Source: Penicillus capitatus | Lineage: Eukaryota; Plantae; Chlorophyta | Assembly (NCBI GenBank): GCA_965649825.1 | Contig: OZ287694.1 | Location: 371,197 to 435,196 of the forward strand | Length of the DNA: 64,000 nt | Direction of reading: 5' to 3' | Shown here: piece by piece, positions 15,301 to 60,584 of the stretch | How the letters are laid out: each line of letters begins with the position of its first letter | Position numbering within the stretch: the stretch's first letter is position 1 | Translations under genes and position numbers: made by a program | The notes under the pieces: model-generated | Databases searched by the model: none | Seen by the model: the letters and a program-made list of their open reading frames with translations, nothing else | What the model was told of the DNA's origin: nothing

Positions 15301-16244
15301 CTCCTTCGGAAGCGCTGCATTCCGAGCGATCATCGAACATGAGCGCTCACGGCGAAGAGATTTGGTAGCAGGCTGGGTGGGGGCTTCCAGACCTCTCGTG
15401 GAGACGAGATCTGGCAACTGCCATTTCATTCTATGACAACCGTCACATCAGAGTAGATGGTGCCCTGACGAATACCTCGACAAAGTCCAGATCAAGGAAG
15501 GCAGGAAGGACAGGTAGAATACGATAGCCACTTTCTCCCGTTGCCAGTAGATGTGTTGTGCCCAGTGGCGAATCTTCCAGACATGGGCAATATCCACCAA
15601 GTCATGCGTTCATGACGCGACAGAGTAACTGAGCCAGCAGCACGTTGAGTAGCGATGACCACATGCTGTCGAATCATTCTATCTGCACGAGTACTGAGTT
15701 GACTGGCACGTTATGGGAAAGGGATGATGAGAATTGCAGAGAATCAGAAGTCTTCCTTCACAGATTTCCGAAAGAATGCTGGCAGCATTACGGGGTCCCA
15801 TCATGAGGTGAGTTGAGCGACCGTTTGAATGGGCATATTGTCATTCAAAGAACTGTCATAGATGATTACATGTTTAAGATTACGCGTTTTCCCCGAAAAA
15901 AACATTATTAGAATCCACTTCATCAGCTGATGGAACGCGTTCAATCTGATGTGACCCGACAGTGAACACTACTGCATTGAAGGCGAAAGAAAAGGACGGA
16001 CAGGATGGATGGAACTTCAGTCCTCTTTGCCTCGCTGCCTCGACTGTCGCGATTTCATCGACATCGCCAGTTAAGAACGAAGACGGTTTGCCGACGACGA
16101 TTTCGCCAGTCTATCCGTGTCGCGTCTGGCCGTCGAGAGAACAGGACGCATCTGTCTTTTCGATGGACGAGGCAATCATCTGATGATGATCCTCGAAACG
16201 AAACGGATCATTCTGCAACGTTTCTTTCTGCGTTCTACGTCTAC

Positions 16245-19200
16245 ATGATGCGAAACTTTCTTCCCTGTCTCAAGCTTTGTCTGCTCTGCTGCGCCCTTGC
16301 GCAGAGAGTCGGACTTACTTGCGCTGTTCAACGCGCGTTGCTGCGTTCGTCAGACGCAGTTTCTGCAGCCGACGGTTCTCCTCCGCGAGCTGCGTCGCAT
16401 CTCTCCAGCGGTGCTGTGTTGCATTTTAGGCTACACGGAAGACAAACTGCCGCCCACACCGTCTGAAACGCCAGCCGACCTCACCGCAAAGCATCCTCAA
16501 TACGTAAGCCACGAATTCGCCTGTCTCCATTCGACGGCGAAGGCGTAAACCATTCCGTCTTTTCTCTCCGTAGACGGCAAAAGAGGAGCGCGCCCCGCCA
16601 GTTTACAGCACATTTAATCAAGGAATCACTACAGGTTCGACTTTTCTTGTCCATTGCACTGAACGCTGAGTTCTGACGATGTTTAAACTTGTCAGGGTTC
16701 GCATGTGCTTTGACGCGAGAAGACAAGGAAAAATATACCACAATGGACGGCCAGACATGGCTCGTCGACGACGGTGTCCTTGGACAAATTGACAACGACC
16801 TGCAGATGCTCGTCAACTGCACAAAGCAAGGCGATGTACTCGCGTTCAACGTGACAGGCGTCGTGCGTCCATCGTCGCCTGTCACCATTCCATGGCAACT
16901 GACCCTCACCACCCAAGTCAGCGGCGTCGACTCCAAAGACGCCGTCTCCCAAAGTTCAACCGCAAAGACAAGATTTACATGTCCTCATAAGAACACGGGA
17001 CTCTTTCTCGTTCAGTAAGACGAACTCGTCTGAGATCGTCATTCTTTCTCTTCTCCCATAGGTCCGGAAACATCACCTTCTCTAACCTTGTCTTCGAGAA
17101 GTGCACATTCGAGAGTGCTAGCAGTGAGGCCCAATCGCTTATAGAAGTCGCATCCTGTAACAGTCGGAATGCATCTGGCCTCGTAACTCTGCGGCACGTC
17201 GCCTTTCGGAAGAACAGACTGATTGGAGCCTCGGCACTTCGAATGTCTTCCCCGTCGTGTTCAGAACTGAAAATGGTTGAGGCGGAGATCTCGGAGAACG
17301 TCTGTTCGGGCGAGGCTTGCGGAGTTTACATCGGAAAGCAAGCCCGGTTGGAAGACTGCACTGTATTCGGGAACACGGTAGACAAAGCCAACGCCCGACA
17401 GTCGTCGTCCCTGATCTATGGCGAAACCTCATCCACCACGACGATCCAAGCTTTCAAGGCTACGGAAAACTACCTAACCGTCATCCAGATCAATGACGGC
17501 TCCCTTTCAGTGACGAAGACGACGTTTAGCCAGAATTCTCTCGATCCAAGTATCGCCGAAGAAATGAACAGTCCATGCTTTCACTTGGTCAAATCATCTG
17601 CCCAAATCAAGGACAGCATGTTTGTTGCAAACGAAGGCTTCAGAGGAGCAGCAATCTTTGCTGATCAGACAAGTATTTCCGTGCTCAACTCAACCTTCAA
17701 CAATAATGCCGGCTTCGAGAATGGTGGATGCATCTACCTGGCAAGCTCAACAGCGAGCGGCAAGCATATAAACGCATCCAGCAATAGCGCAGAGATACGC
17801 GGAGGATTCATGTTGGTGACAAACTCGACGGTGGTGCTCGACGACACGAACGCGGCCAACAATCGTGCACAAGAGCGGGGCGGATTTATAAGCGTCGAAA
17901 ACTCAAACATGACACTCCAGCGCACAAAAGCGACGGCCAACGGTGCAGGAATGTACGGCGGATTCATGTCAGTGTGGGACTCGAGAGTAAAGCTGGAGGA
18001 TACGAACGCAGTGAACAACAGTGCACAAGTGCGTGGTGGTTTCGCACATATGGAGCAGTCGACTGCAACGCTCAAGCACACCATCGGGACATCCAATAGT
18101 GCGGGAGACCTTGGCGGTTTTGTGTTTGTGTGGAACTCGACGGTGAAGCTGGAGAATACGCACGCGCTGAAGAACAGTGCACAATCACGTGGCGGCTTTG
18201 CGTACATTGAGCAGTCGATTGCAACGCTCGAGCGCACCAACGGGACATCCAACAACGCAGGAGACATTGGCGGCTTCATGTTTATGGCGAACTCGAGAGT
18301 GAAGCTGGAGGATACAAACGCGCTGAACAACAGTGCACAAGCGCGTGGTGGTTTCGCGTTCATCGAGAACTCGAATGCGACACTCGAGCGCACCGACGGC
18401 ACATCCAATAGCGCAGGAGACATTGGCGGCTTCATGTTTACGTGGAACTCAAGGGTGAAGCTGGAGGATACAAACGCGCTGAAGAACAGTGCACAAGCGC
18501 GTGGTGGTTTCGCACACATTGAGCAGTCGACTGCAACGCTCAAGCACACCAACGGGACGTCCAATAGCGCAGGAGACCTTGGCGGCTTCATGTTCGCGTG
18601 GAACTCGAGAGTGAAGCTGGAGGATACGAACGCAGTGAACAACAGCGCAGAAGCCCGTGGTGGTTTCGCCTACATTGAGAACTCGAATGCAACGCTCGAG
18701 CGCACCAACGGGACATCCAATACAGCAGGGGACATTGGCGGCTTCATGTTTACGTGGAGCTCGAGCGTGAAGCTGGAGGATACGAACGCGCTGAACAACA
18801 GTGCACAAGCGCGTGGTGGTTTCGCACACATTGAACAGTCGACTGCAACGCTCAAGCACACCAACGGGACATCCAATAGCGCAGGAGACCTTGGCGGATT
18901 TATGTTCGCGTGGAACTCGACGGTGAAGCTGGAGGATGTGAACGCAGTGAACAACAGTGCACAAGAGCGTGGCGGTTTTGCACACATTGAGCAGTCGACT
19001 GCAACGCTCAAGCGCACCAACGGGACATCCAATAACGCAGGAGACCTTGGCGGCTTCATGTTTGCATGGAGCTCGAGAGTAACAGTGGAGCACACCACCG
19101 ATATCAACAGCAAATCCAACCATGGAGGCTTTATCTGGACAGGGAATTCGAGTCTGGACATCTCGCAATCACGATTCCTTCGCGGCTCCGCGAACGTTTC

Positions 19201-22200
19201 TGGTGGTTTTGCTGCGGCAAGTGAAAACAGCTCGATCCTTATCGTTGACTCAGCGGTTGAACGAGCAAAATCCAGAAACGGTGGAGCAATCTGGTTAAAG
19301 AAGTCTCACTTGGTAGCGCGAAATCTCTCCATTCTTTATGGCCAAGCGGACGAAAGCGGTGGTGGTGTGTATGGCTTTGAGTCATCAACTGTCCTCTGTT
19401 CAAACTGTAGTCTTAACTACAACTCGGCTGAGGGAGGTAACGGCGGTGCAATTTTTATTGATGCTGGCTTGGAACAGAGTCTGACTCTGCAATTAGTCCA
19501 AAGCCACGTTGAGAACAACGTGGCGAGGATGGGAGGTACGCACTCGTGTTTTAGTACAACTGTCAACGATATGTATGTGCAGGTGGACTCTTCTTCGACT
19601 GCAGCGAAAGCGTAGAAGAATGCCTCGCCAACAGCGCCGACTGTCCCGTCATGGCTTTGGTGGAAACACAGTTCTCGAACAACGAAGCCAGCATCGCGGG
19701 AGGAGCGGTCTTCGCTGGATACTCAGAAGCCATCCATTTGCGTTGCACCGACGCTTCGTCAGACGCAGGACTAGACTTCTACAGGGAGCAAGAGTGGAAA
19801 GACCTGAGGCAAGTCGAATCGGACAAGGACATCTGCTCGTCGTGGAAAGGCAATCGAGCCGAGGTATATGGACAGGATATCGCGACGTATGCCTCAGCTG
19901 CACAGATGACGCTTGACGATGCCAACAAGACCGTCTGCGTGAGCGGAGGAGAGAACTGTGTGATCGACGGATACCAAATTGGCACAGATCTGCCGACGGC
20001 GACGGTGAAGCTGCTCGACGGACTGGGGCAGATAACTGCAACAATCCACCGCCAAATCAATGCTAACATGTACTCGTCGAATAGTCAATTCTTGGTTTGG
20101 CCAATTCTTCTGCCGATGGAGAATGGATCCTGTACATTTCAATCCATCAGAGGCTTCGTACCTCCGGGAGAGTACAGCTTGATCGTCGAATTTGACAGAG
20201 AGGCGATCAAGGACGTCGGGATTACCGTGAGAGTCCACAACTGTTCCGTCGGCGAGTTTGTGTCGAACGCTGGATTCTGTGAGAGCTGCAGCGGCACAAC
20301 GTACAATTTCCTCCTTTCAGCGACCGTTTGCCATCCCTGTCCAGAGAATGGGAACTGCGAATCTCGGGTGATCACACCAGAAGACGGCTACTGGCTAAAG
20401 ACGCCGTGTTCCGATAATCTTCACAGATGTCTACCGACCTCTGCCTGCGAGTCTCAAGGCCGTTCCGAAAAGTTGAAGACCATGGTCGAAGATGTCACGA
20501 GCTGTGATCTCGAGGAAGAATGGATCGAAGAGTACACACAGTCTCAGTGCGCCGAAGTAAGCTGCTTTCATGATTCTTCAGATGGTTAAATCATCTCTCT
20601 TCGAAAGGGTCACACGGGCTCACTCTGTGGATCCTGCGAAGAAGCTTTCGGATCTGGTCTGTCGTTCGAATGCAGACGGTGTCTCAAGGGCTTTATCAAT
20701 GTGGCCTATATTCTGACGTCAGCGGCAATACTGTTGGGAATCACAGGCACCACAATTCAAGGCACGGTCGGCGCTCTGCGCGGAGGCATCGCACAGACTC
20801 GCAGCCTGAGGACAGCGTCTTCATCGACGGAAATCGTCATTGAATCGCCACGTCTGCGAACTGAAGTGGGCGTAAAAGACATCATCAGTGCGTCTACCCA
20901 ACGAGTACGCTGTAGGTCCAAGCTGTCGGGGTGCCTGCTTCTGAGAAAACTTTGGCCAAGTGGAAGGCCGTCGAGATGCTCAAGGTGGAAGTCAATCTGT
21001 TCATCTGTCGCTGAACTCGTTGTCTCGTAGATCACTTTGAGCTACGTCCAAACGACTGTTCTTCTGGCTTCTCTTGACGTCGGATGGGCGATTCCTGTGA
21101 TCGTTATGGCAGAAGCGGCAGGTGAGGCCAGAATCGCGTGAGTTTCTGCTTGCTAACTGTCATACTGCTGCTGTCAGAATTGCTCGGAGGTCTTGCGACG
21201 GATGGCATTCGACGATCCGTCGTATGTCTGACAACGAAAGACCTGTCCTTGCATCCGACGGCTCTGGCGCTCGTCGTCGGCGTGTGCATCGTCCCCTGCT
21301 CCGTGCTTCTTTGCTGGATCGTGTTCTGGGCGGCCAAATCGGTGAAATCTGGAAGCGATGGTCTTCGCCGCTACCTGTCGAAGAGATCTGTGCTTTCGGC
21401 GATGGTCATATGGTATGTCACACTCGTGCCGGTGCTGAAGACCGCATTGAGCGTCTTCCTATGCATCGACGTACACGACTTGACAGACTTCGCTGAGGTC
21501 GATGTAACTCACATGTACTGGGCCGTCGACACAAGCATGAAGTGCTACGAAGGAGACCACGGAAAACTCGTCTATGGAGTGGTTGTTGCGTTTGTGTGTC
21601 CAGTTTATGGTGGATTACTAGCGCTCTTCGTTTTCTTCCTCAAACGTCCACCCCAGCACCTCACCCACAGAGCTGGCTGGGCGTACCAGACGACGGGATT
21701 TCTTTACCGATCTTACAGAATGGATCGCCGTCGATACTGGGAAGTCGCCATCGTCGCGAGGAAGGCCATCATTGCTTTTCTGGTGTTCTGCGCCCACCTG
21801 TTCGACAGCGGACTGCCGATCACCGGCGTCGCATGTGTCATCATGCTTGCCATCCTGGCTCAGATTCTGGCAATGCCGTTCCGCGAAGACTTCAAAGACC
21901 TGAATGGAATGGAACTGGCGTCTCTTTTCGTGTCGGTGGCGACGTCGTTGGCAGCTGTCATGCTCAAAGACGAGAGCTACCCTGAAGACTTCACTCGTGT
22001 GTTGCTCACGGTCGCGTGTGCTTTGCTGAATGTCGTTGCGTTCTGCGTCTTTGTTTTCTACATTCTCAAGTTTGCAGCTGAATACCTGAAGTATAAGTTG
22101 AGTGAGCGAGATGAGCTCTTTGCACCCGATGCTGGCATGTTCCGCGTTCTGGCGCACTGGGTCAGTTACGAAGTCAGACATTTGATTGGCAAGTTGTGCC

Positions 22201-22247
22201 GTGCTTCTAAAGACCCAGAGATCGCCGAGCAATCGGTCGATGCCTGA
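16245..22247 (+). CDS. Receptor-like gene C (multi-exon): close paralog of A in opposite orientation, with a tandemly expanded beta-helix
   Basis: Signal-like MMRNFLPCLKLCLLCCALA. Same intron positions as gene A. ORFs 16689-17018, 17243-19615, 19651-20589, 20701-21030 and 21138-22247 join through GT-AG introns with no exonic stop that I could find. Confidence 0.85.
17957..19048 (+). repeat. Coding tandem array of 7 x 156 bp (52 aa = two alternating 26-aa GGF rungs) in gene C
   Basis: Unit about GGFMFAWNSRVKLEDTNALNNSAQAR-GGFAHIEQSTATLKHTNGTSNSAGDL. The first GGC is at 17957 and the next half-unit starts at 19049 = 17957 + 7x156. Confidence 0.95.
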
Positions 22248-26260: not shown

Positions 26261-27782
26261 TTCTTTCTCGATCGAGTGCTTAAACGATGTTGCGTAGATT
26301 GTTAATGGTTTGTGATTTGAATCGTAGAAGAACGAAACTTTAAAAATGCAGAGCCTTTCGCAAAAGAAAGACAACAACTATACTTCTACAGCGCTTTTGT
26401 CACGCTCTCGCATTGTTGATGTCATCTCGTTTGGACTGTCACATCGTTCCTGCCTCGTTTTTACGGGGTCTGTCTTTCAAGAGGCGCTCGTACAAGGTTT
26501 ACGTCCTCTCAGGAGCACTTAGCTATGGCTCTGAGAGTCAAATGACTCGCCTGACCTGTGAAGTTATTGCACAATACGTGCATAAATGGGCGCATACAAA
26601 CCTCGAAACAACCTTGCCTTCCAAGCTGTCACGCGGATGCGCCGCGCTAAAACGTACTGCACAGCGGAAGACTTTGTTGTGTTTACAGAGCAGGTCAAGA
26701 AAAGTTAAGATTGTCCATTATATATGCGCGTGCTGAGGTGACTTTCTAGGCATATGAGTCAACCTGTGCGCAGAGCCGGAAGAAAGGAAAACCCTTTCAC
26801 AGAAGAAAAGCCTTTCTGATGTGACATAAGCGTCCTTCCCACTAGGGTGACCCACATAGAAGAAGGCAGTCACATCACCATGACGAATCTTGGCGACACA
26901 AGCTTCAAAAGTTTTCCACTGTTGGTTCTCTCGAGTGCGACCAGCGCCTCGACAGTTTTATAGTGTTTTAGTGATGTAATATCAAGGCGGCGCGAGATTA
27001 TTTTTAGTAACAAAAGAAGAATATTCCGGAATCTGCTCGGAATCTGTGATATAGAAGGCACGGGCCTATGTTTAGATTGAAAGGTGGAGGGAAGTCAACG
27101 AGAACCTACGACCTGTTATTTAGAGATTGACATACGTGTAAGTAGAAGATGAGCTCATTATTAAGAGCGATGTAGATTACCACAACAATGGAACGTGTCG
27201 GCGGAATTCGCGATTGACGTTGTCATTGGCCAGGGTGGAGAACAAACGTTTCAAAGGTCGGGAAGCAATCCACAACTTAAGCCTCCCCGCCTCATGACTT
27301 TCTAGGCAAATTAAACACCAAATCCCCATAAGCAGAAAATAGAATCTCCTAACGCACTCAGGCCCCGCGTGACATGACAGCTAGCGCCTCTTTTAAACAG
27401 ATGGCCCACCCTTTCACAACAAGACAGTCATATCGCCATAGAGAAGGTCTCGGTGACAGTGCGACATATATCGCTATGATTATTGGGCTGATGGGCATTT
27501 ACTTGGCATTTTGTGATCCTTGTGCTTAAGGCACACGCTTCGACCGTCGCTACGCATGGTGCAGAAGTCGGAGTAACAAGAAGAGCGAATATTCCGATAC
27601 CGTAGCGTGATTGGCCATCGGCTGGATCGACGTTTCCTTGCAGCTTCCTCTTCCGACGGTTGTTATTTAAAACTCGCGTCGCGATTGGCTAATCGAGCGA
27701 CACAATGCAGTGACAACGTCACATCAACTGAAAGGTATATAAGTGGTGACGCACTCCACTTTCCGTCATTCTTTCTTTCCGT

Positions 27783-28540
27783 GAGATACTCCCCTACAGT
27801 TGCGAAGTTCGAGTCCGATGCGTCGAACACGTCGTATTGGTTGTTCCGTCATACGAAGTACCAAAGTATCCTCTCGCACACCACCAAAGAGGACGCTGAC
27901 GTAGACGGCGGAAACCGCGTGCCGGTTGTGGCGCGGACCGTTGGGCGCATTTTAGAGGCGTCGGGCCCACCCGTAAGTCCCGAAGGCGATGCAGGGGGCG
28001 TCTCCATGAGGCGTCCACCTTTCCGACCTGTTCGAGGAATCCCAGGGGGAAGGACATCCGTGTGATTTCCTTTCTTTCCGGAGGGAAGGGGGGTCCTCGT
28101 GATCGCCCTTCCTTCTGGGAGATACTCACCCCATTTGCGCACTTCGAGTCCAAACGCACCGAACGTGGTATTCGTTGTTCCGTCAGTCGTGCTACTGACT
28201 AGAGTATCCTTGCGCACCACTTGAGACGGTACCGTAGACGGCGGAAACCGCACGACGATTTGGCGCGGACAGTTAAGCGGCTTCTAGCGTCGTCGGTGAT
28301 GGACTGAAACGACGGCAAATCAGAGACTAGTCTGCAGAATCGAAGACATCGAACAATCAATCATTAATCCGCGTTCGCCCGCCGTTTCTCTGCCTCCGCC
28401 TCGCATCCGCATGCGCGCCGACGGCGCCCGGCGCAGCGCGCCGCGCGCACACGACAGTCGGGCCCACTTGTAAGTCCCGAAGGCGATGCAGGGGGTCGTC
28501 TCCATGAGGCGTCTACCTTTCCCACTGGCGGTGGAATCCC
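27783..28540. repeat. Diverged direct duplication of about 260 bp; second copy interrupted by about 165 bp of GC-rich sequence
   Basis: Copy 1 is 27783-28043 and copy 2 is 28119-28540. Shared blocks: GAGATACTC, GTAGACGGCGGAAACCGC, GTAAGTCCCGAAGGCGATGCAGGGGG, CTCCATGAGGCGTC, GGAATCCC. Confidence 0.8.
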
Positions 28541-28561
28541 GTAAAGAAGGACATGATCTTA

Positions 28562-28899
28562 TTATGCTCGTGACAATCTTGTAAAAAAGCATTTCATCTT
28601 ATGCTCGTGACAATCTTGTAAAAAAGCATTTCATCTTATGCTCGTGACAATCTTGTAAAAAAGCATTTCATCTTATGCTCGTGACAATCTTGTAAAAAAG
28701 CATTTCATCTTATGCTCGTGACAATCTTGTAAAAAAGCATTTCATCTTATGCTCGTGACAATCTTGTAAAAAAGCATTTCATCTTATGCTCGTGACAATC
28801 TTGTAAAAAAGCATTTCATCTTATGCTCGTGACAATCTTGTAAAAAAGCATTTCATCTTATGCTCGTGACAATCTTGTAAAAAAGCATTTCATCTTATG
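28562..28899. repeat. Perfect 37-bp minisatellite x9, no spacers
   Basis: ATGCTCGTGACAATCTTGTAAAAAAGCATTTCATCTT starts at 28564, 28601 ... 28860, with period exactly 37 and identical units. Confidence 0.97.
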
Positions 28900-29093
28900 A
28901 TTTTCCAAAAACTCGGTCCAAACAACGGTCGGTGCGTTTGCCAACGCAACGTCGAGCCCGTGTTTCCTCGTGGCGGCACTAACACGGAACGGACAGACAA
29001 CTGACAGTGTAAACGTCGTCATCAGCCTCTTGCGGGGATGGTACGTGTCTTGAATCATTCCTCTTCTGCCCCTCATCATCTTGACAGCACTCT

Positions 29094-29160
29094 TAGGGGT
29101 CTGATGAGACGGGTGGCGCCGTCGAAACTGCTCGGTCACTCGACTGAACAGTCACCCTAG
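29094..29160 (+). ncRNA. Type I hammerhead ribozyme
   Basis: CUGAUGA at 29101-07. Stem II GACGG/CCGUC with loop GUGGCG. GAAA at 29124-27. Stem III CUG..UCGGUC(ACUC)GACUGA..CAG. GUC triplet with predicted cleavage after 29153. Stem I GGGU(29097-100)/ACCC(29154-57), extendable past a bulge. Confidence 0.88.
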
Positions 29161-30209
29161 CCTGAGGCGGTGTTGTGCGAATTCGCTCGAAAGGGCAAAG
29201 GGATGTGCGTTCGCGGTAGGCTGTTCGTTTGTGAAAACGTACAGATCGCAATTACGATCCTGTGATCCTGTGAACGTCGACCTGACGGCCGAGTCCGGAC
29301 CGGATAGCGAGTCGCGCAGGGGACTGTGGCCGAGCGATGTGACCCTGCCTAGTTTCTGAGGGGGCCACGTCCTGGGGGGTGTTGGTTGAGTCACCCGAGG
29401 CCATTTTCTCTGGCTCTGAGGTTAGGGTGATTCACCTGCCTAGTCCAGTCGCGTCATTATGCGGGTATTTAAGGCAAGAATCTGAACCACTGAACGCCTT
29501 GCTCTGTAAACGAGAAAGACTTCCGCTGTTATCGTTTTCGTTCGGCGCCTCTGCGCGACAGGGACTCCGTCGGCAATGCTATTTACATAGCTAGAGGACG
29601 AACACAACAGGGCAGTTCTGTTTAAATACCCAGCAGTGTGAGAGTCACATCATTATGCAAGCACATCGTCACTCACACCTCGCGTCATGCGCGTTCCAGT
29701 GATGTTCTGCTGGCGTGGCGCCACAAGGACGGTTGGCACGCCAGCAGCGACTCCTCGCCAGAAGACCCGAGGAGGAACCAGCTACCTCTCACACACACCT
29801 TTCACAGATCCAACGCGTCCGTTTTTTAATGTTCATTTTGTCTAGATGTCAGAGCGATGTGACTGTCGCCGAGCGATGTGACACTGCCTTGTTCTGTGGG
29901 GGTCAGCCATGCGCAGAGGCGCTGCCTGTCTTGTCAACTGTCGTCAACGGACCACTTTCTCTGGCTTTTGGGCGGAGTTGACTCACCCGTCTTATCAATG
30001 GGGGAAATTTATAGGACGCTTTGGGATACATGTTTGATTTTTGCGCACTCTGTAAGACCTTGTTTTCGGCCATCCTGGAACGCAGCAACGACGAGTAGGA
30101 ACCGCGACGCGGCAGCGAATCGACGATGACAGAAGAACCGCGGACGATGTCGACATATCTACTCGTGATCTGGACATCGGCCGAGCTCCGACACGTAAAC
30201 AGAAGACTT

Positions 30210-30247
30210 GAGGGTTTCGACGGTGCCACCCGTCTCGTCAGACCCCT
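30210..30247 (-). ncRNA. Second hammerhead catalytic core, inverted; no adjacent cis substrate strand found
   Basis: The minus strand reads AGGGGU-CUGACGA-GACGG-GUGGCA-CCGUC-GAAA-CCCUC. It differs from the first hammerhead at only 2 positions over the shared ~34 nt; the flanks are unrelated. Confidence 0.7.
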
Positions 30248-30479
30248 TCGCGTCGAGGCACCGAAACCCTCGACGCGATCCGGAAGAATCCGGATTGGCT
30301 AGGATGACCCCAAGCCCACCCTCCCCACCGAACCAGCGACGCGTCACCCGAAGGTGGCGTGGCACTAGCGCAGCAGAGCCGTATGCCTTAAGCGTCCGGC
30401 GGAGCGCAAACTTCGCAGCCAGGTGTGGAGGTCATCAGCGTCCCCGAAGGGAAGCCTCGCAACGCGCCTTCGACACTCC

Positions 30480-30797
30480 GAGTCCAGCGTCTAACAACCT
30501 TCGCAGGCGCCAACTACGGTGCGGTGAGTAAAGATCCACGGCCACCCCCCGACCTCGCCTCCCGCTCCCTAGAGGGGTTTTTGCCTCCCCTTAGCCAACG
30601 CATCGTGTTGGTCGACTTACAGCATGGTAGCACTGGCCTGGTAAGCGTTCTGAGTTCCGAATCCAGCGTCTAACGACCTTCGTAGGCCGTCAACAACGGT
30701 ACAGTGACTGAAGATCGCCGGCATCCCGCCCCGATGGGTGCCTCCCCGCAGCCAACGCATCGTGTTGATCGACTTACAGCATGTGGCAGCACTGCCC
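30480..30797. repeat. Diverged tandem duplication of about 150 bp
   Basis: Copies at about 30480-30637 and 30659-30797 share TCCAGCGTCTAAC.ACCTTCG and GCCAACGCATCGTGTTG.TCGACTTACAGCATG. Confidence 0.8.
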
Positions 30798-30987
30798 CGG
30801 AAAGCCGAGAGCGAGAACGCCACCAGTAGAACCGCCAAAACGACAAAAGACGAAATGCGCGTCGCGGCGATCCTTATATACCTAAAAAGTGATGTGACCC
30901 TCTTGTCACGTCAATCTGTTGACGGTTAAACCACCGAAGGTGCGTGTTGATTGGCCGAATCGACGAGAAATTGATGTGACAGCCGGT

Positions 30988-31086
30988 GATGGAATATTCT
31001 GAAGTGACGGATGGAATATTCTGAAGTGACGGATGGAATATTCTGAAGTGACGGATGGAATATTCTGAAGTGACGGATGGAATATT
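30988..31086. repeat. Perfect 22-bp tandem repeat x4.5
   Basis: GATGGAATATTCTGAAGTGACG starts at 30988, 31010, 31032 and 31054, with a partial copy at 31076. Confidence 0.95.
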
Positions 31087-34000
31087 TCGATACCGCCACG
31101 TGATTGGCTGTCGGCTGAGTCGGCCGAGAAGCTGATGTGACCGTTTTTCGAGCAGCGCAAGCCTCCTATTAGCTAATTCGGCGGGTGAATGACAAATCAA
31201 TTTACTAATCAGAGCGAGCACTCGGCTGCAACGTCACGTCACGCGCGACCATTCTCTACGCGCCACTCTACCCTACCTTCGAAGATCGTCTCAACCGGTC
31301 CCGTCAGGCAGAGGCCTCCGACTTGCAACAGCGAGGTGCCGAACGGGTCATCGACAACGCGGAGATCTACGGTTCGCAGCGAAGCTCAGAAGACGCCAGT
31401 GTCGACCTTGTAGCGCCGCGCCCAGAAGACATCCCTTCTCCCGGACCACCAGACGCCCCTATGATGACCAGACCTCCGAGAATGGTTTTGTGCGACAGTT
31501 GGCTTTCCGTGTTTGCACACTCATGTCTTCTGATATTTTCCTCTATCGAAGTCGAATATTTTCGGAAGTAAATGTCGCTCGGTCAGAGTCTTTTTAATGC
31601 GCTTTAAAAAAAGCTGATACGAGCAATGTTTTTTCGGACGGTTATTAGGCTTGTGGAACATCTTGTGTCTTCTGCTATTCGGTTTCTCCGGCAAAGCGAA
31701 ACCTTAAAGTCATTCTAGAACTTTGAGTCGTCGGCTTTCACTTCGTATGTGGCCAGAGGTTTGAGGCAGATTAGGGACGAGAGCACTTCCGACAAAGAAT
31801 TCCTGGAGTACGAAAACATTCGCGGTGCACACGTCTTGCGCACCTGGAATACTCCAGTCGAAGCACTCGTCAAGAAGTTAAGACACAGCAGGTATCCAAC
31901 ATCTCCCTCGCGGTGATGTTATGTGTCTCGCATCCTTGGATGGCATCGACTTCATAAGGTCAGCGATAAACGGAAAATGACGATTTGGACGCTTGTCGAT
32001 CTTATTTGGTTGGCTTTGGAGGCTCTTTCTCCAAACCTCGAAGAAGAAGCATGTGTAGTGGCCGAAGGAACTAGGGAGCACCAGCCTGAAGAGCCTGAAT
32101 ATGTGTTGGCCGAAGATAAGCAGGAAGTCTCGTAATGAAAAATAATAAAATGAAGCCGCGATCTCGGCTCTTGTAAAAAAATGCGATATGTGTTCTCCGA
32201 CAAGCACCTACATCTCTGGTGTGTGTCCTTACGAGATCAATGTTCCTAGAATCGTAGTGGATTCCATAACTGTAACGCACATTAGCCGGTTTATATCGTG
32301 ACTTTGTCGACCGCCATTCTCTTGCTGTGCTCAAGGGGCGCTTAAAGGTTCGACGTTGGGTCTCAGTGTCTCTACTGGAAAACAAGGCATTAACATAGCA
32401 CAGCCTGAGTATGCAGCCAGTCCTGTTTTGGTGACGATTGGAAGGTACATAGAAAGAGAATCAGCGCACTTATTGATTTCACAGGCCAAGAGTGCAGGTT
32501 CTCCTTGCTTGATGGAACGTCTGCCCCGTTTGAAATGGTTGCTGGAAACACAATGCTTTCTAAGTGGTCTGACATTACGTCTTATGCAAACGAGATTTCT
32601 AACGAGAGAATTTTTGGCCCTCTGCTTAAAACGACTTCCCATGTTTCCACGTGGCGACGTTCGGCGATAACAGATGGTGTTGTAGTATACAATGTGTATA
32701 ATCAACGTATGTTCGACAACGTAAAGATAACAATCATGCTCATGTAAAAAGCTGTGAAGAAATACGGCGACAGTGTAGAGGGAATGATCTCTTGGTCGAA
32801 AATGCTGAATGCGGTTAGGTGGCAGAATCCATCGTTGCCATGGCAAACGTGAAACGCACTGGTTCATGCTCAATGAACGTCACAGGATGGATCGATCAGC
32901 TCGACAACCAGTGCCAACGACTCCATTGCAGAGACAGACACATCGTTACGAAACCTGTTGTGCTAACGACGGCGTCCTGCTTTGACCCTCGCACTCACGA
33001 CCAAAAGGAAAAATCCACCCTTCAGGAAGCCGGAGGATGACTCTGTCACTCTCGTCACCGGGAAGAAATCGGCTCCCCAATTCTCTCCTGTGCGTGCGAG
33101 GACTTCATTCCTCCCTTCAGAGAAACCACAGTTGTTCTGTTCGCTGCAAAACGACGACAGACTGCAGATCTTTACCCACGCGGATACTCTTGGTGTCATC
33201 TTTGAAGTTGATAAGAGTGAATTCGAGATCGACCTTCATCTGCACCACGTTCACTGCATTGAGACAAGCCTCCAAGGCTCCATCATCCCCGAGCTTGGCA
33301 ATGATCTTCCTGAACCAGGGGTCAGACAGCAGCAAACAAAAAACAGCTGTCTTCTCGCACCAGTCGGCGTTGAAAAAGCTAAAGATCTCTGAGATGAACA
33401 CACTCCTCAGCGGCGACGGGTTCAACAGCGATCGATACAGAAGAACCTTCGCAGAAAAGAGAGATTGGGAAGAAAGCAGACAACACAGAAGGAGCACACC
33501 TCATAAGACAAACAGCAACCGTTTGCGACGACTGAGTAGGCATGTACCACTCTTTTGTCGCCCGATCCCCATCTCACTACCATTGAACCGCAGATGAAGC
33601 AAAAACTCAAAGGCAGTGCCTACCTCTATCTGCTGCTCTCGGCTGCGAGACAAGACAGGAGAAGATATTCTCCCCTTCTTCTCTTCTATCCTGCAGCACC
33701 TTTGCAGCGAAGTGTTCGGGACTCCAAGAGGAGAGTGTCAGACACAGGATCGTCCAATCACACGCCTCGGCGCATTCCGATGCTTCTGCAGGATCGTTAG
33801 TGTACTCCAGTATCTGGACGCTCACGATCCCAGACGCGGAATCGAGTTCCTCGGCAATATCTGCAGGAACGAGATCAACGGAGTTTCTTGCGATTAGCAG
33901 AGCAACTTTTGTGATGGTTGCGATACGCCGATCGGTGATGCGTCATAGAGATCTCGCCAGTCAGCCAACAAGTGCGGTGTCTGATGCCGTGCAAGAAGAC

Positions 34001-37602: not shown

Positions 37603-38463
37603 TTACGACGTTGACGTCGCACCTTCGGATTTGTGACGTTCCGATTCAGGTAGATGCGTCATCAAGGACCCCGTGAAATAAGAAGAACGCGGAAACCACA
37701 CTGCACATCGTTTCTGCCACTGATCTGCCACTTCTGGCGCGGCAAACACAGGTCTTAGCAGTATCTGATGCACTTTTTCGCAATCCTTGAGCGAGGGTCT
37801 TTGTTTTTCGATCTCTTCAGATTTGAGGAAGGATTCCGCGTGGGCTGCTCTGTGCTCAGGATCCAGGATCATTAGCATCTCGATGCCGACAATCTTGTGG
37901 ATGATGCTCGAAGCGGACTCCTGCTCCATGTAATCCTGATTGTACTGGTAGACGGTGCGTCCATGCAACAAGGCATCGATGCCTTCTTTCAATACCTCCC
38001 CCCGGAGGGGAGACATCTTCCACTTCTGTCTTCTCTCGCATTTCGGCCACTGCGCACAACGACAGTCCACGAAGCAGCAGAAAGGGATAGATGTATTACC
38101 TGATTTGCAAAGACGGACAGTCATGGCGTGTACGGTGGGATGTGCCCTTCCTGCAATGTTCATGATCCTTTGGACGCAGGAAAGGACCAACAGCATCCTC
38201 CCTTTCCGAAAATAGACTTCAAATCCGAGCTTTTGCGAATCGCGCTTGTCTGCATTGTAGCTCCGCAGCATTGTTACGAATTTGGTCGCCTCTTCTAACG
38301 GCATCTTGGTCGTCGCCAGTTCCACGCCATCAGGAACCGGATCTGCCTTTGCTGGCCTAAATGCGAATCCCTTTGTGTCGGCCAGGCGCGCCGAGGCGCC
38401 GCAGCGGAAGATGGATGGCGCGGGCTCGGCCCGAGAGCGGAGGCGGGCGCGCAGCGCGTCCAC
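37603..38463 (-). CDS. 286-aa ORF of unknown function; 5' end abuts the LINE
   Basis: Long ORF with globular-looking composition and a possible in-frame intron near 38030-38095. No motif recognised. Confidence 0.35.
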   Translation of the reverse strand: MDALRARLRSRAEPAPSIFRCGASARLADTKGFAFRPAKADPVPDGVELATTKMPLEEATKFVTMLRSYNADKRDSQKLGFEVYFRKGRMLLVLSCVQRIMNIAGRAHPTVHAMTVRLCKSGNTSIPFCCFVDCRCAQWPKCERRQKWKMSPLRGEVLKEGIDALLHGRTVYQYNQDYMEQESASSIIHKIVGIEMLMILDPEHRAAHAESFLKSEEIEKQRPSLKDCEKVHQILLRPVFAAPEVADQWQKRCAVWFPRSSYFTGSLMTHLPESERHKSEGATSTS

Positions 38464-38536: not shown

Positions 38537-40633
38537 ATGTCTGACCGAATACCCCATTCGCCCACACATCTGCAATCCGCTATTCGAGCCCGCAAAAGAG
38601 AAACGTGGCGGGAGTTCTTGGTCGATCACAGCGGGAGCACCAAGGACCTCTGGGCAACGTATAAAAGACTTACGAAGCCAACCAGAGTGGACAAGCTCAC
38701 CTTTCTAACCACTGAGTCTGGAAACACAGTGGAGGAACCTTCCAAGATCAGTGACCTTCTCTTCCAGAAGTTCTTCCAGTCGAACCCAAACATTGAACCG
38801 AGGAGAAATTATGTACTGGACGCGCCGCCCTTGTTCCCTCGAGGGCAACAACTAAAACACAGGTCTGCGGTGCTCTACCTAGGAATCTGGATTGACGAAA
38901 CTTTGTCTTGGAGCCCTCAGGTTCACAGCGCAGCGGGCAAAGTCCGCACGCGATAGGAGTGGATCAGACGAATGACTGGACCGACCTGGGGCATGCTCCC
39001 GGAAGCGGTCGGGAAACTCGTCAGCCGAGTGCTCGAACCTGCTGCCTATTACGGAGCAGAAGTGTGGCAAGCTGTGGCATACAACGAAAGGAAGCTGGCC
39101 CCCTTGAGAAAGTCATGCGACAAGCCTGTCTGCTTTTGTCAGGCTCATTCAGAACTCCTTCATACCCCTCGGCCTACACGCTTGCCGGGGTCCCCCCAAC
39201 ACAACAGATCGTCCAACAAGCACTCTATTTTGATTCAAGACGAAGACACCGCGAAGAAGCAGGCTCGCTGTTCCGCTTATTCCGAGCAGGGCGCTCGGCG
39301 GGCCAATGCTACCGCAGAATTGCTTGGTCCCGCCTTCAAAGATCGATGCCTATGAGGCCGCTGGAATGCAACCCGCAGAGCTCACGACCATGGAGTCCGG
39401 TCCCTCCTCACTTGCTCGATCGTCTCACAGGCACAGCAGCGGTCCCAGAAACGGAACGGCCAGATTGGATCTTGATTGTAACGACGCACAAGGACCACGC
39501 TCGTAGGCGTATCGGTACAGGGTAAGGCTTGTTCCAAAAAGACCGGTCAGTTGGGGAAAACCGGTGGGACCCCGACCGGGCATCCGAAGAACTTTCGGTC
39601 CTGCTAGGGATACAAAAGGGACTATCCAAGCTAAGAGAACTAACCTGCCAAGCTGAGAATGACAGGAAACAAAGCCTTGGCATAGCGGTGGACTCGAAAA
39701 AGAGACAGGCTGCAGCGCTGCGATGGACAAACGTACCTGTTGGAAATGTAGCATCCTATCCACTGTTCGTAGCCGTCTGAAGCGGTTCGTTTCATGGTAA
39801 CCACCTTTGGCGCGCTGTCCATCAGATGCGACGGGTGCTAGCCTCCGAACCGAATTCTTCATAACAGTCGGGCGATGGTTTTCGAACATGCCCTGAAGTT
39901 CGCGACTGATAGCTGTTGGGGTTAGGAAAGCCACAACCATCGTGGGTATTTAAAGACCGACAATCCTCTTGTAATTATCCTGAGTTCTTGGTGCTATCTC
40001 TGAGTATTCATTATCACCGTCGTCACGTTGTTTCGACTCGTGTTTGTTTCTCGTTGTGCAGAAGATTCCCAACAGTACCTAACCTCAGTGTTGAGATACA
40101 GAAGACTCTGTTACTCTGGTCTCTTGACGGGCACAGCACCTTTTGGACGACCTCGGATTGGTGTCCGGGACTCAGTCCCTTCATGTCGGTGCTGAAGAGG
40201 GCAAAATCCGCGACCGAATCAAAGGTCTGGGATGCTAAAGGTATGCCTCCGGACAGAGCATGGTTCAAGCGAAGAATAGCTCAGTACCTCAACGATATGG
40301 CTCGGCGAGAGATCCAACAAAGAGAGGCCAGTCAACACCTGACAGCATACTTATTAGAGTTCAAACGCGGCCAGTTCCCTGGAAAGTATTTACATAGAGC
40401 CCCAGCCTCCAGACTCTCTCAGTTTGCGGCCAGCCACTTTCCCTGCAGACAATACCTGAAGCGATTTGGAATATCAGACGACCCAGTGAGTTGCGACTGC
40501 GGCCACTCATGCGAAGATCGTGACCATTTACTGCTCGACTGTCCAAGGTTCTCGTTGGCCACGCGACATTTGGTCAACCGATTAGAGGCCCCCTCACAGT
40601 TGCCAGAATCTTTGACAATGCGGAAGAGATCTC
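38537..40633 (+). mobile_element. Degenerate non-LTR retrotransposon ORF2 (I/Tad1/R1-like, with RNase H and terminal CCHC); RT core deleted
   Basis: Pre-RT linker (AIRARKRETWREF...KDLWATYKRL...DLLFQKFF) joins directly to post-RT LYLGIWIDETLSW...WG...VLEPAAYYGAEVW. RNase H-like remnants follow (GTG*GLF, EELSVLLGIQKGL, IAVDSK), then CDCGHSCEDRDHLLLDCPRF. Stops and frameshifts are present. Confidence 0.85.
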
Positions 40634-40993
40634 GGAATTCGTCGAAGCTATAGCGGAGCAGTGGTCCTCGGATGATCGCAAGTGGAAACGAGACACGGGT
40701 CCAAGGGAAGGGAGGCGAAACTTCCCCGACGCTGGACGGCCCTAATCGCTTCATCTTGGAACGCAGGGACCGGAACGCAGAGAGCATGTCTAAAGAAACT
40801 AGGTCTTCAAGCACCCAAGATGCATTAGGGAAGTCGCAGTTCCGATCGTACCGCAGTCTCTGCCCAACCTTCCTTTCTTTACTGTGATGATTCGATCTGT
40901 CACCTAAAGTTTGACGCCTAGAACTCTGTCTCTGTTACCTATAAACACATGCACTCCTGATCATTTCGAAAAGGAGTTGTAGAAGCAACCAGA

Positions 40994-43356: not shown

Positions 43357-45228
43357 CTAGAGTCTGAAGGAGCGGCTCCGGGAACGTGATGCGACTGGGA
43401 TCGTCAGGCGCTGGGACGTCAGGTTGCTCTTGATACCAAAGCTCGATAGAAACAGCAGCAGCACGAGGGAGAGGCCATACATCAGGACGTTCACGTGCAG
43501 ACTGCGACACTGTGCAACGACGCATCCGCCGTACAGTGCCTTGTTGTCGGCAGCGTCTGTTTCGGCCAGCTTCGCCGTCGAATTGCCCGAGCACATGAAT
43601 CCACCGCCCTTCTCTGCGCTGTTGTCCGTCGCATTGGTGCGATCAGGCGTCACTCTCGAATTCGGTGCATGGACGAATCCGTTGCAGTCGTCTGCGGTGT
43701 TCTTCGGTGCTTTCGTGTGTCTGAACTCCGACTCTGAGCTATCCACGTGGACACAGCCACCCTTGTCAAATGCGACATTGTCCTCGAACACGGAGCCGGA
43801 CACGGAAATCTTCGACTCGTAGCCGTAGATCACGGGTCCTCTGAAGCCTTCATTTGCACCGAACGTGCAGTTCTCTATTTGGACAGACGACCTCACTGAA
43901 TGAACACAGTTACTCTTCATTCTTTCGTCGACTCGCGTGATTAAAGCATTCCTCCTGAACGATGCATTCGAAAGTGAAATGTGGCCTTCTTCGATTCGAG
44001 TGATCGTCAGGTTGTTTTCGGATGCGGCGAATCCATGGATCGTGGTTCTCGATGAGTTGTGCCCGTAGAACAGGGAAGACTGCTGCCCATCGGCCTCGGC
44101 GACTCTGTTCCCGGATGCGGTGCAATCTTCCGGTCGGTCTCTCTGTGCGAGGTGAACTCCACGGGCTTCGCCCGAGCAGACGTTGTCCGAGATCTCCACT
44201 TCGACCATCTCTAGTTCTGAGCAGGATGGAGAAGACATCCGGAGTGCCGACGCCGCAGTAAGGTCGTTGTGACGAAACGTGAAGCGGTGCAGAGCCACGA
44301 GACCGGCGACAGCTTCTGTGCGGCATGCCGCACCTTCGATGAGTGATCGGGCTTTATGTGCGCCGTCGAATGCGCACTCTTCGATGACAAGATCGACGAA
44401 GGTAACACTTCTGGACCTACGGGAGAAAAGGTAATTGTCGTCTCACTCGAGCTGTCTGTCTTACTGAATGAAAAAGAGTCCCGTGTTCTTATGAGGACAT
44501 GTGAATCTTGTCTTTGTGGTTGAACTTTGGGAGACGGCGTCTTTGGAGTCGACGCCGCTGACTTGGGTGGTGAGGGTCAGTTGCCATGGAATGGTGAAAG
44601 GCGACGATGGACGCACGACGCCTGTCACGTTGAACGCGAGTACATCGCCTTGCTTCGTGCAGTCGACAGGCATCTGCAGGTCGTTGTCAATTTGTTCAAG
44701 GACATCGTCGTCGACGAGCCATGTTCGGCCGTCCATTGTGGTACATCTTTCCTTGTCCTCTCGCATCAAGGCACATGCGAACCCTGACAAGTTTAATCGT
44801 CGTCAGAATTCAGCGTTCTGTGCGATGGACAGGAAAAGCCGAACCTGTAGCGATTCCTCGGTCGGATGAGTTGGAAAGTGGTGGAGTGCGCTCCCCGTTT
44901 GCCGTCTACAGAAAAAGATGGAATAGTTAATGCCCTCTCAGTCGAATGGCGGCAGGAGAATGATTGACTAACGTCTTGTGAATGGTTTGTGGTGAAGTCG
45001 GCTGGCGTTTCAGACGGTGTGGTAGGCAGTTCGTCGTCCATGTAGCCTAGACGCAACACAGCACCCGCTGGAGAGATGCGACGCAGTCGGTGGAGGAGAA
45101 CCGTCGACTGCAGAAGCTGCGTCTGGTGGACGCAGCGACGCGCTTTGAACAGCGCAAGTCTGTCTGCTCTGCTGCGCGAGCGCGCAGCAGAGCAGACGGA
45201 GCTTGAAACGGAGAAGAAAGCTTCGCAT
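43357..45228 (-). CDS. Receptor gene D: gene-C-like N-terminus fused in frame to a single TM helix, then a stop (internally deleted chimera or pseudogene)
   Basis: ATG 45228 with exons homologous to gene C. The beta-helix ends at KALYGGCVVAQCRSLHV and continues NVLMYGLSLVLLLFLSSFGIKSNLT, resembling TM1 of gene B (SIVYVVLSILTVMALSSFAIKSSL). The Cys-rich block is absent. Confidence 0.65.
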
Positions 45229-46012
45229 CTCGTGGACGTAGACTGCAGAACGAAACGTTGCAGAATGCGTCGTCCGAACTAACGCGGTCATTATCAAGTG
45301 ATCGAGACAGCGGCTGAAAAGACAGGCATTGATGGGGGTACACCAACGGTTCTGGCCCCGCGGACCGGACACGCTGTCCGCTTCCTGATGGGACGGCGGT
45401 CCGCGGGTGCCGACGGGTATAAAGCTGACGTCACGCCCTGCCTGTAGCATTTGCATTTGCTCAGGTTCGTCCCTCCGCTTCGCCGTGGCGCGTGCGCGCG
45501 ACGCGGTGCGTCTTTCGTTTGGCATCCTCGTCAGGCATCATGCCTTGAATTGTCTCCGCAGTGCAACGAATCCTACATGGTACAAGATGCGCTCGTTGGA
45601 CGGAGAGACGCTGCCAACCAGGTAGGTACGCGGGCGACATATTTTGAAGAATATCTGCTATTGCTATTGACTAAACGAAGGTACTGTCTTCAACAGGCAA
45701 ACATTCAGCACTGCCGATGCGGGAGTGTCCAGTGAGGCAGAAGGGATGACCTCATTTCGGAGACTCCTTCCTCCGCGTCCTCGAACCGGCGGAGAACGTA
45801 TCCGGTAAAGATGTGTGACGTTCTCGGTCACACTTTTGGCGTCTGGAATCGCAGTCCGATTCGAGAATCTCGACGTAGCGCGGGATCGTGTCCTGCGGCT
45901 TCCCCATGGCTTCCCCCGCCCCTCACACATCCAGACAACCCTCACTCTCTGCGACCTCCGAATTCAGGTCGCGACGCTGACGGACCAGAAGATGTCGTGG
46001 ATGCAGATCGTC
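44653..46012 (-). repeat. Inverted segmental duplicate, copy 1 (Cdc45-like 3' part, receptor promoter, 5' exons)
   Basis: Near-identical reverse complement of 58900-59232 plus 60339-61160, apart from the two different LTR insertions. Confidence 0.92.
45330..45533 (+). mobile_element. Solo LTR (204 bp) with 5-bp TSD GGCAT in the promoter region of gene D
   Basis: Termini TGATGGGG...CCTCGTCA. GGCAT lies at 45325-29 and 45534-38. The empty site is present in the sister duplicate near 60480. It has an internal TATA-like GGGTATAAAG and is homologous to 60133-60338. Confidence 0.9.
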
Positions 46013-60338: not shown

Positions 60339-60584
60339 GTACCTTCGTTTAGTCAATAGCAATAGCAGATATTCTTCAAAATATGTCGCCCGCGTACCTA
60401 CCTGGTTGACAGCGTCTCTCCGTCCAACGAGCGCATCTTGTACCATGTAGGATTCGTTGCACTGCAGAGACAATTCAAGGCATGATGCCTGTCTTTTCAG
60501 CCGCTGTTCGATCATTTGATAATGACCGCGTTAGTTCGGACGACGCATTCTGCAACGTTTCGTTCTGCAGTCTACGTCCACGAG

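Follow-up and report, generated by a model that had tools for sequence, protein, structure and literature searches.

Our subject is a pair of hammerhead ribozymes in a 64,000-nt stretch of the Penicillus capitatus genome (contig OZ287694.1, positions 371,197 to 435,196), which we call the window, and the repeated family of non-coding units to which they belong. On the forward strand, positions 29094-29160 of the window read UAGGGGU-CUGAUGA-GACGG-GUGGCG-CCGUC-GAAA-CUGCUCGGUCACUCGACUGAACAG-UC-ACCCUAG. A preliminary description had recognised here a complete type I hammerhead in non-coding DNA, and the core, the three helices, and the comparative pairing described below bear this out. The element, which we call A1, has the conserved core of hammerheads: C3 U4 G5 A6 N7 G8 A9, G12 A13 A14, an A15.1-U16.1 pair, and a residue other than G at H17. 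The first pair of stem II is G10.1-C11.1, as is usual for hammerheads. We predict the same cut site as was proposed before, after 29153. The preliminary description had also drawn a bulge in stem I, but the pairing that it involves (U94-A159 and A95-U158) is not kept among the copies, whose shared stem I comprises the 5 bp of GGGGU with ACCCU.

With the hammerhead enforced, A1 folds at -25.2 kcal/mol, versus -26.2 kcal/mol for the free minimum. In an 81-nt context, the corresponding values are -26.1 and -28.0 kcal/mol. We scanned both strands of the window with a deliberately permissive type I descriptor, which required at least 4 bp in stem I, 3 bp in stem II, and 2 bp in stem III beyond the 15.1-16.1 pair, and which allowed stem III inserts as long as 120 nt. 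The single matching site was A1, in two registers, and the background was 0.015 sites per shuffled window (200 dinucleotide shuffles, both strands). The second register is nested within A1 (GGUC 29134-37 with ACUC 29138-41). We set it aside because family members with other stem III sequences do not share it.

A repeat search found that positions 29095-29128 are 94% complementary to positions 30214-30247. A 33-nt core is present twice in the window, with the second copy on the other strand and 1.1 kb away (30246-30214), and not once in 100 shuffles. The shared segment comprises the 5' strand of stem I, the catalytic core, stem II with its loop, and GAAAC, and the flanks are unrelated. The two copies differ at N7 (U/C) and in loop II (G/A). 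We tried to read the minus-strand copy as a type I hammerhead, but it has no downstream stem III or substrate strand. It forms a type III hammerhead instead, with the cut site upstream, and it has all of the conserved core as well. We call this element B.

The window stretch matches the ENA metagenome contig ERZ25074695 ctg340529. A related contig, L002 (ERZ26696514), contains seven more copies of the 33-mer inside 3.5 kb. Further copies were found indirectly: the core is open in one frame and lies within spurious predicted open reading frames (ORFs). A profile of their translations (...AKGSDETGG[TA]VETL...) identified 19 spurious core ORFs on 13 contigs, all from ENA metagenomes, and we analyzed six further loci. 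In total, there are 27 copies in the window and in seven related metagenome contigs from two ENA assemblies: 16 are type I (class A) and 11 are type III (class B). This confirms the suggestion that A1 belongs to a repeated family with copies elsewhere. Across the 27 copies, the core is invariant except for N7 (U/C) and H17 (C/U). The related contigs, from a flagellate eukaryote, encode ribosomal proteins L14e and uL16 and fragments of dynein heavy chain; among solved ribosomes, the uL16 is nearest to those of plants.

We also scanned viral contigs with the core pattern, without a match, and genome contigs, with one match, in a metagenome-assembled genome of Acidimicrobiia. A core-pattern match in metagenome contig L003 is probably due to chance, as the upstream GGGG is missing. 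Metagenome contig L004 (JGI Ga0099817_1511750) has the same 33-nt core at 358-390, with one change in loop II. CCCAGCCAAGG stands before this core and a perfect hairpin after it; outside this region, the contig has no relation to the window. No canonical hammerhead could be completed from the flanks of the L004 core.

In class A, the core is followed by the stem III hairpin and then by GGUC^ACCCUAGCC, where the caret marks the cut. When folded individually, 5 of 5 class A copies adopt the hammerhead, two of them as the unconstrained minimum. In the alignment of the 16 copies, 96.4% of the cells are paired, versus 28-52% if the 3' partners are slid. Three unrelated sequences occur in stem III, yet the helix is kept in each, with 10-12 bp in every copy. 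In four pairs of stem III, both bases have changed (examples are C-G/U-A and, in two cases, G-C/C-G), so this helix covaries. Also, the C131/A148 mismatch of the window is replaced by a U-G pair in the closest relatives.

In class B, GGGCUUGGGGU(C/U)^AUCCUAGCCAA comes before the core and GAAACCCU comes after it. Because the strand with the cut site precedes the core, the cut site is upstream of the core. Stem III is formed by GGGGU with ACCCU, and stem I (AUCCU/AGGGGU) closes a two-hairpin junction. In the class B alignment, 96.8% of the cells are paired, versus 33-55% when slid, and nearly all of the pairs are invariant. The structure that we propose for class B is thus based on conservation and on an exact fit to the hammerhead rules, without covariation. 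Locus L015 contains a compact third form at 10871-10953 (minus strand, core at -10903), which is a type III hammerhead with the same core and a stem I insert of about 35 nt. Its stem III, GCGG/CCGC, is a compensatory variant. It is located 500 nt past the right end of a module (described below), in the opposite orientation.

In both classes, loop II (GUGGCR; UGGC) can pair with an invariant (A)GCCA beside stem I; in class B, 97.7% of the cells are compatible with this pairing. Pseudoknots between stems I and II are common in natural hammerheads and are needed for fast cleavage (PMC3088659). The likely tertiary contact joins (U)GGC of loop II to AGCC(A), which is invariant and lies immediately 3' to stem I. 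A1 is a real type I hammerhead, probably active and cutting in cis. That the copies form a conserved family of hammerheads seems to us highly probable.

The preliminary description had proposed a search with Infernal and the Rfam hammerhead models, and this check was negative at threshold. No Rfam family reached its gathering score anywhere in the window, and the hammerhead models gave nothing at E ≤ 10 on 501 nt. Hammerhead families RF00163, RF00008, RF02275-7, and RF03152 had no gathering-score matches in the window or in 137 kb of loci. The sole alignment, when 86 nt was given alone, was to RAGATH-1-hammerhead (RF03152), at 18.8 bits. This is below the cut-off of 56.3, so the window site is not a member of RF03152 or, by this test, of any other Rfam hammerhead family. 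In the alignment, the places of stem I, CUGAUGAGAC, CGAAAC, stem III, and also GUC are right; RAGATH-1 resembles A1 in the layout of stem I, core, stem III, and GUC.

The lack of an Rfam match at threshold is what would be expected if A1 matched the hammerhead consensus by chance. But 0.015 sites were expected per window, there are 27 related copies, and stem III covaries. The comparison has already refuted a chance match, to which we give virtually no weight, and we consider the comparative evidence to be stronger than the negative Rfam outcome. At least 27 canonical hammerheads are missed by every Rfam model at curated thresholds. Because a family of this size is invisible to Rfam, the counts of hammerheads in protist genomes and metagenomes are likely too low.

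The hammerheads lie at the ends of longer units. At several other loci, two such units are arranged head to head around a shared promoter region, in modules of 2.4-3 kb. Five modules have the same layout: an A1-type hammerhead pointing left, a centre, and then block X followed by two hammerheads, type III first and type I second, with a spacer between them, all pointing right. In these modules, the type I hammerhead follows the type III hammerhead in the same direction, 225-240 nt away. Conserved sequence is found upstream of the cut sites: type I copies of the window's kind are preceded by block Y (85 nt), and nothing downstream of the A1-type cut is shared. Block X (about 160 nt) precedes the type III cut and contains UUCG-capped hairpins, at least one of which alters its sequence yet stays paired. 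We rejected the idea that block X is a C/D-box small nucleolar RNA: the UGAUGA box is not conserved (L010 has CUGCUGA) and a D box is missing. We found no tRNAs and no Rfam families in the hammerhead-ended units or loci, and no conserved sense-strand ORF in any of the units.

The module centre is 91-98% identical across five copies, which is above its surroundings. Two CCAAT boxes and TATATAAG face the left arm, and the octamer TATTTAAG faces the right arm. More broadly, of the 18 units that end in a hammerhead, 16 have TATWTAAG on the same strand, 235-1664 nt upstream, accompanied by CCAAT or ATTGG no more than 260 nt away. For background, this octamer occurs 28 times in 318 kb (both strands, with the window stretch counted twice). 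We rejected transcription by RNA polymerase III, as there are T4 runs just after the putative start of the window's minus-strand unit.

Homology between modules ends about 75 nt past the left cut and 20-40 nt past the right cut. The flanking genes vary by locus: among them, L015 and L012 have housekeeping genes, and L010, L011, and the window have families that resemble surface proteins. Locus L013 has two modules in tandem, 2.9 kb apart, and is the only locus with tandem repetition of modules. In the window and in L002, the two units are convergent and each has its own half of the centre, which is the arrangement at the boundary of two tandem modules. In L012 (10150-10360), a tandem repeat (CCCTACTTACCCTACTACTGTCTGTTTTCGTTTACTTA...) comes immediately after the type III hammerhead, in place of the spacer and the type I partner. 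Differences in unit length are due to internal duplications and to tandem repeats of 22, 34, and 37 nt.

These ends of modules could also be viewed as DNA elements, if the 33-nt segment were a terminal inverted repeat or a protein-binding site and its likeness to a hammerhead were incidental. The segment is nearly invariant across species whose neutral DNA is 70-80% identical, and stem II does not covary. Also, the module ends are outward-facing, mutually inverted copies, and the homology between modules stops 20-80 nt past them. But neither a matching cleavage triplet with a complementary strand, placed downstream of the core in type I and upstream of it in type III, nor stem III hairpins that stay paired despite their unrelated sequences would be required of a DNA motif. 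Nor are the two module ends inverted repeats of one another past ACCCTAGCC. We consider a DNA-level function to be very improbable.

In the window, the unit that ends in A1 (the L unit) is about 1.4 kb from TATA box to hammerhead and would start near 27770. Past ACCCUAGCC, it lacks the hairpin and U-rich tract of its relatives. The unit that ends in B (the R unit) would start near 30850. Both hammerheads, the type I of the L unit and the type III of the R unit, are intact. In the closest relatives of the window, L011 and L010, there is a type I hammerhead about 225 nt downstream of the type III hammerhead. In the window, about 510 nt of unrelated sequence replaces the segment that would bear it, so the R unit has no downstream partner ribozyme.

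We propose that the L unit is transcribed from its TATA/CCAAT region and that the RNA would fold into a three-helix junction, probably stabilised by pairing of loop II (GGC) with AGCC 3' of stem I. The RNA would cut itself after C29153. Its 3' end would keep the ribozyme and a 2',3'-cyclic phosphate, and the downstream RNA would be detached. In the R unit, the type III cut after C30306 would free an RNA of about 0.5 kb that ends in block X. In the intact modules of the relatives, the type III and type I cuts together would excise an RNA of 293-371 nt that contains both cores and has the ends 5'-AUCCUAGCC and GGUC-3'. Since AYCCUAGCC follows both cut sites, the 5' end of the excised RNA is able to pair with GGGGU in the downstream core. 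This would re-form a nicked type I hammerhead, with a geometry that should permit ligation, and the RNA could close into a circle. The hammerhead folds and their conservation, the covariation of the type I copies, the layout of the modules, and the association with promoter motifs are established here; transcription, cleavage, a role in 3'-end formation, and circularisation are all steps that we infer.

The best explanation that we have, and one that we hold with moderate confidence, is that cis-cleaving ribozymes set the RNA ends of a repeated family of non-coding genes. Whether setting the ends of promoter-driven non-coding RNAs is the main role of the family is close to an even question, and we lean slightly against it. 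It is more doubtful that these genes use built-in hammerheads to form their 3' ends in place of the usual cleavage signals. On this more doubtful reading, one core is used in two circular permutations, so that the ribozyme cassette between upstream and downstream RNA would remove itself, possibly as a circular RNA with both ribozymes. The excised RNAs are not unusually structured (fold z of -1.8 to +0.4), and their spacer evolves faster than block X does. Also, the joint copying of the promoters and both arms would be unexplained. These points weigh against the excised RNA as the main product.

Several other observations weigh against our favoured explanation, in which the ribozymes set the ends of non-coding RNAs. 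Few independent events lie behind the doubly changed pairs of stem III, as most of these pairs do no more than set two subfamilies apart. No variation is seen in stem II, in loop II, or in most of the type III structure, and their pairing is supported by conservation, not by covariation. The proposed pseudoknot between loop II and AGCC is invariant as well, so covariation speaks neither for nor against it. The Rfam hammerhead models stay under threshold for the copies in the loci as well as in the window. Two of the 18 units (L002 A1 and L012 B) are missing the octamer. More generally, the TATA and CCAAT boxes are matches to a consensus that may not be this organism's, and transcription, the start sites, and cleavage are deduced from sequence. 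Finally, 3'-end formation alone would leave the second ribozyme after the first unexplained.

The preliminary description had linked A1 to Penelope-like elements or retrozymes. Plant retrozymes have hammerheads within LTRs (long terminal repeats) that measure 300-400 bp, a tRNA-Met primer-binding site, a polypurine tract, and 4-bp target-site duplications (PMC5680766). The modules could be retrozyme-like non-autonomous elements if the RNA between the two cuts is circularised and is copied by a reverse transcriptase acting in trans, such as one of the Ty3/gypsy type. As in plant retrozymes (whose hammerheads are type III), there are two hammerheads in direct orientation, the RNA between them is a few hundred nucleotides and within the size range of viroid-like and retrozyme circles, its 5' end can re-form stem I and so bring the ends together, and there is no coding capacity. 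It is also a multi-copy family at different loci, and tandem hammerheads of algae and oomycetes have been termed putative retrozymes (PMC5680766). An LTR retrotransposon lies 6 kb from the tandem module pair of L013: it is a Ty3/gypsy-type gag-pol ORF of at least 1476 amino acids (16474-20258, minus strand). Thus, a reverse transcriptase is available in these genomes, although it does not adjoin the modules.

In contrast to retrozymes, there are no LTR-like direct repeats around the ribozymes: in self-comparisons of the units, only the 33-40-nt core was repeated. We also found no 12-mer resembling a tRNA-Met primer-binding site (up to 2 mismatches) within or beside any unit, and we saw no target-site duplications at the module ends. 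The unexceptional folding of the excised RNA and the fast evolution of its spacer also weigh against this view, and the copies in the window are a solo type I hammerhead and a type III hammerhead without a partner. The two ribozymes of a module differ in topology, unlike those of plant retrozymes, so both cores stay on the excised RNA. The copied part includes the upstream promoters and two divergent units, which the cleaved RNA does not contain, so a single RNA intermediate could not carry it. We view a retrozyme-like element as improbable.

The hammerheads of Penelope-like elements are minimal, with a very short stem III, while stem III of A1 is a long and stable hairpin of 10 bp. A1 could be part of the pseudo-LTR of such an element, possibly of a decayed copy that lost its reverse transcriptase gene. 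Type I predominates among the hammerheads of repeat elements in eukaryotes (PMC3088659). Penelope-like elements have hammerheads in pseudo-LTRs next to a reverse transcriptase gene, often with inverted truncated neighbours, and some are found in the green lineage and in protists (PMC8557442). A1 shares the type I topology, and the two copies in the window are inverted. But we found no reverse transcriptase or endonuclease gene near A1, using Pfam on 20 ORFs of the window and tblastn with gag-pol, in agreement with the preliminary description. Similarly, the precomputed Pfam lists of the seven loci contain no Penelope-type reverse transcriptase or GIY-YIG domain beside the modules, and just one unrelated gypsy-type pol. 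Nearly half of the family is type III, and the modules have their own upstream promoters. A Penelope-like origin is thus highly unlikely. Given the absence of LTRs and primer-binding sites, the long stem III, and the copying of promoters with divergent units, neither link to a known retroelement held up; the fallback that the host might be of an undescribed type comes close to the promoter-bearing module that we found.

Genomic hammerheads are known by the thousand, but only a few of them have been given a role beyond rolling-circle replicons and retroelements. In rodents, the hammerhead in the Clec2 3' untranslated region flanks a gene and processes its transcript. Type I hammerheads of eukaryotic repeats include those of Schistosoma SM-alpha, newt satellite 2, and cave-cricket pDo500, as well as those of metazoan retrozymes. 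Our type I copies resemble these in their topology, canonical core, multiple copies, non-coding nature, and expected trimming of repeat transcripts. However, the known examples sit in short tandem repeats or repeats that resemble short interspersed elements, with one ribozyme each, whereas the hammerheads described here end a unit of 0.5-1.4 kb with TATA and CCAAT boxes. To our knowledge, there is no described case of type III and type I hammerheads that share one core and bracket a cassette. Also, hammerheads of eukaryotic repeats are overwhelmingly type I (PMC3088659), but this family counts 11 type III members among its 27 copies, built on the same core.

By analogy, the closest functional counterpart is in prophages, where multiple hammerheads flank genes and process their transcripts (PMC3088659). 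There, as in our proposal, cis cleavage sets the ends of transcripts and does not serve rolling-circle replication. The differences are that the host is a eukaryote, that the genes, which are non-coding, come with promoters of their own, and that one core occurs in two permutations. The ribozyme itself belongs to a very well-known class; it is the setting that is unusual, with a promoter-bearing non-coding module, two permutations, and invisibility to Rfam. If our explanation is correct, this family would be a natural example of ribozymes that set the ends of cellular non-coding RNAs, and it may be a route to small circular RNAs without retroelement machinery. The coordinates of the features in the window are given in Table 1.

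Table 1. Hammerheads, putative promoters, and associated features in the window (cut sites and promoters are predictions).
Feature	Position	Strand	Details
Type I hammerhead A1	29096..29162	+	Identified by sequence, constrained folds, descriptor scan, and alignment of copies
A1 stem I	29096-100 / 29154-58	+	GGGGU/ACCCU, 5 bp
A1 core	CUGAUGA 29101-29107; GAAA 29124-27; GUC 29151-53	+	
A1 stem II	29108-12 / 29119-23	+	5 bp, loop GUGGCG
A1 stem III hairpin	29127-37 / 29142-52	+	10 bp, one C/A mismatch, loop ACUC
A1 predicted cut	between 29153 and 29154	+	C17 = 29153
A1 invariant AGCC 3' of stem I	29159-62	+	
Type III hammerhead B	30204..30319	-	Hammerhead fold is the unconstrained minimum free energy structure, -56.9 kcal/mol
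B stem III	30311-07 / 30215-11, extension to 30204	-	
B predicted cut	between 30306 and 30305	-	C17 = 30306
B stem I	30305-01 / 30246-42	-	Closes two hairpins, 30294-79 and 30277-49
B core	CUGACGA 30241-35; GAAA 30218-15	-	
B stem II and loop II	30234-19	-	
Putative L-unit promoter	27610..27743	+	Inverted CCAAT (ATTGG) 27610-14 and 27684-88; TATATAAG 27736-43
L-unit body	27770..29095	+	No conserved sense ORF; internal duplication of about 334 nt
L-unit 37-nt tandem repeats	28562-28899	+	
Block Y	28911-28980	+	Conserved, just upstream of A1
Putative R-unit promoter	30873..31107	-	CCAAT 31107-03 and 30954-50; TATATAAG 30880-73
R-unit promoter 22-nt tandem repeats	30988-31086	-	
Block X	30306..30463	-	3' part of the RNA ending at the type III cut; 76-90% identical to relatives
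Replacement segment	29590..30100	-	About 510 nt, unrelated, in place of the relatives' segment of about 150 nt with the second (type I) hammerhead

Both units contain direct duplications: 27822-27927 is repeated at 28156-28260 (about 334 nt apart), and 30582-30626 is repeated at 30739-30783 (about 157 nt apart). Such internal duplications account for much of the difference in length between copies. A conserved block, GGCAGGUGAAUC-ACCCUA(G/A)CC-UCAGAGCCAGAGAAAAUGGCC, is found in the window at 29420-29432 (-), in L011 at 10649-10660 (+), and in L014 at 3818-3829 and 6266-6277 (-). It resembles a cut site with its stem I strand, and no catalytic core precedes it on the upstream side. This block could be either a relic or a target for cleavage in trans. 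We also considered a telomerase template and rejected this idea: AAACCCUAAC, about 100 nt after the downstream cut, is not conserved, and AAACGAUAAC is present in the window and L011 but is variable in L002.

Elsewhere in the window, at 39916-40653 (+) and thus 10 kb away from the hammerheads, there is a sub-threshold match to zf-RVT (E = 0.0026; 18.8 bits, with the cut-off at 27.5). Positions 771-3192 and 19559-21974 form an inverted segmental duplication that is about 80% identical and includes several ORFs, among them a 369-amino-acid ORF (21138-22247). This ORF belongs to a family with 90 homologues, all on ENA metagenome contigs, and has no Pfam domain; many of the paralogues are on ERZ25074695 ctg340529. 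We tried to reach an orthologous locus in a relative via the flanking genes, but since this family is multi-copy, the look-ups led to paralogous places.

Large ORFs without introns at 3198-4520 and 7287-11528 (-) encode right-handed beta-helix and Chlamydia-PMP repeats. Similar genes are also near the modules in L010 and L011, and together these genes may form a family of surface proteins located in variable regions. A 156-nt tandem repeat at 17957-19080 (7.2 copies, 84% matches) lies in a 790-amino-acid ORF (17243-19615), which corresponds to protein repeats of 52 residues. Between 44653-46012 and 58900-61160, there are several inverted repeat pairs of up to 653 nt that are 98-99% identical, with older relatives at 16130-17021 and 4478-4998. 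These look like recently duplicated or mobile sequences that are unrelated to the hammerheads. An ABC-transporter-like ORF (47953-49008, minus strand) contains 7.5 copies of a 15-nt unit (GGCGGCGTGAATGGC) in perfect tandem repetition, at 48454-48566. Finally, 37603-38463 (-) encodes a C-terminal fragment of a NatA auxiliary subunit, which suggests a split, intron-containing gene.

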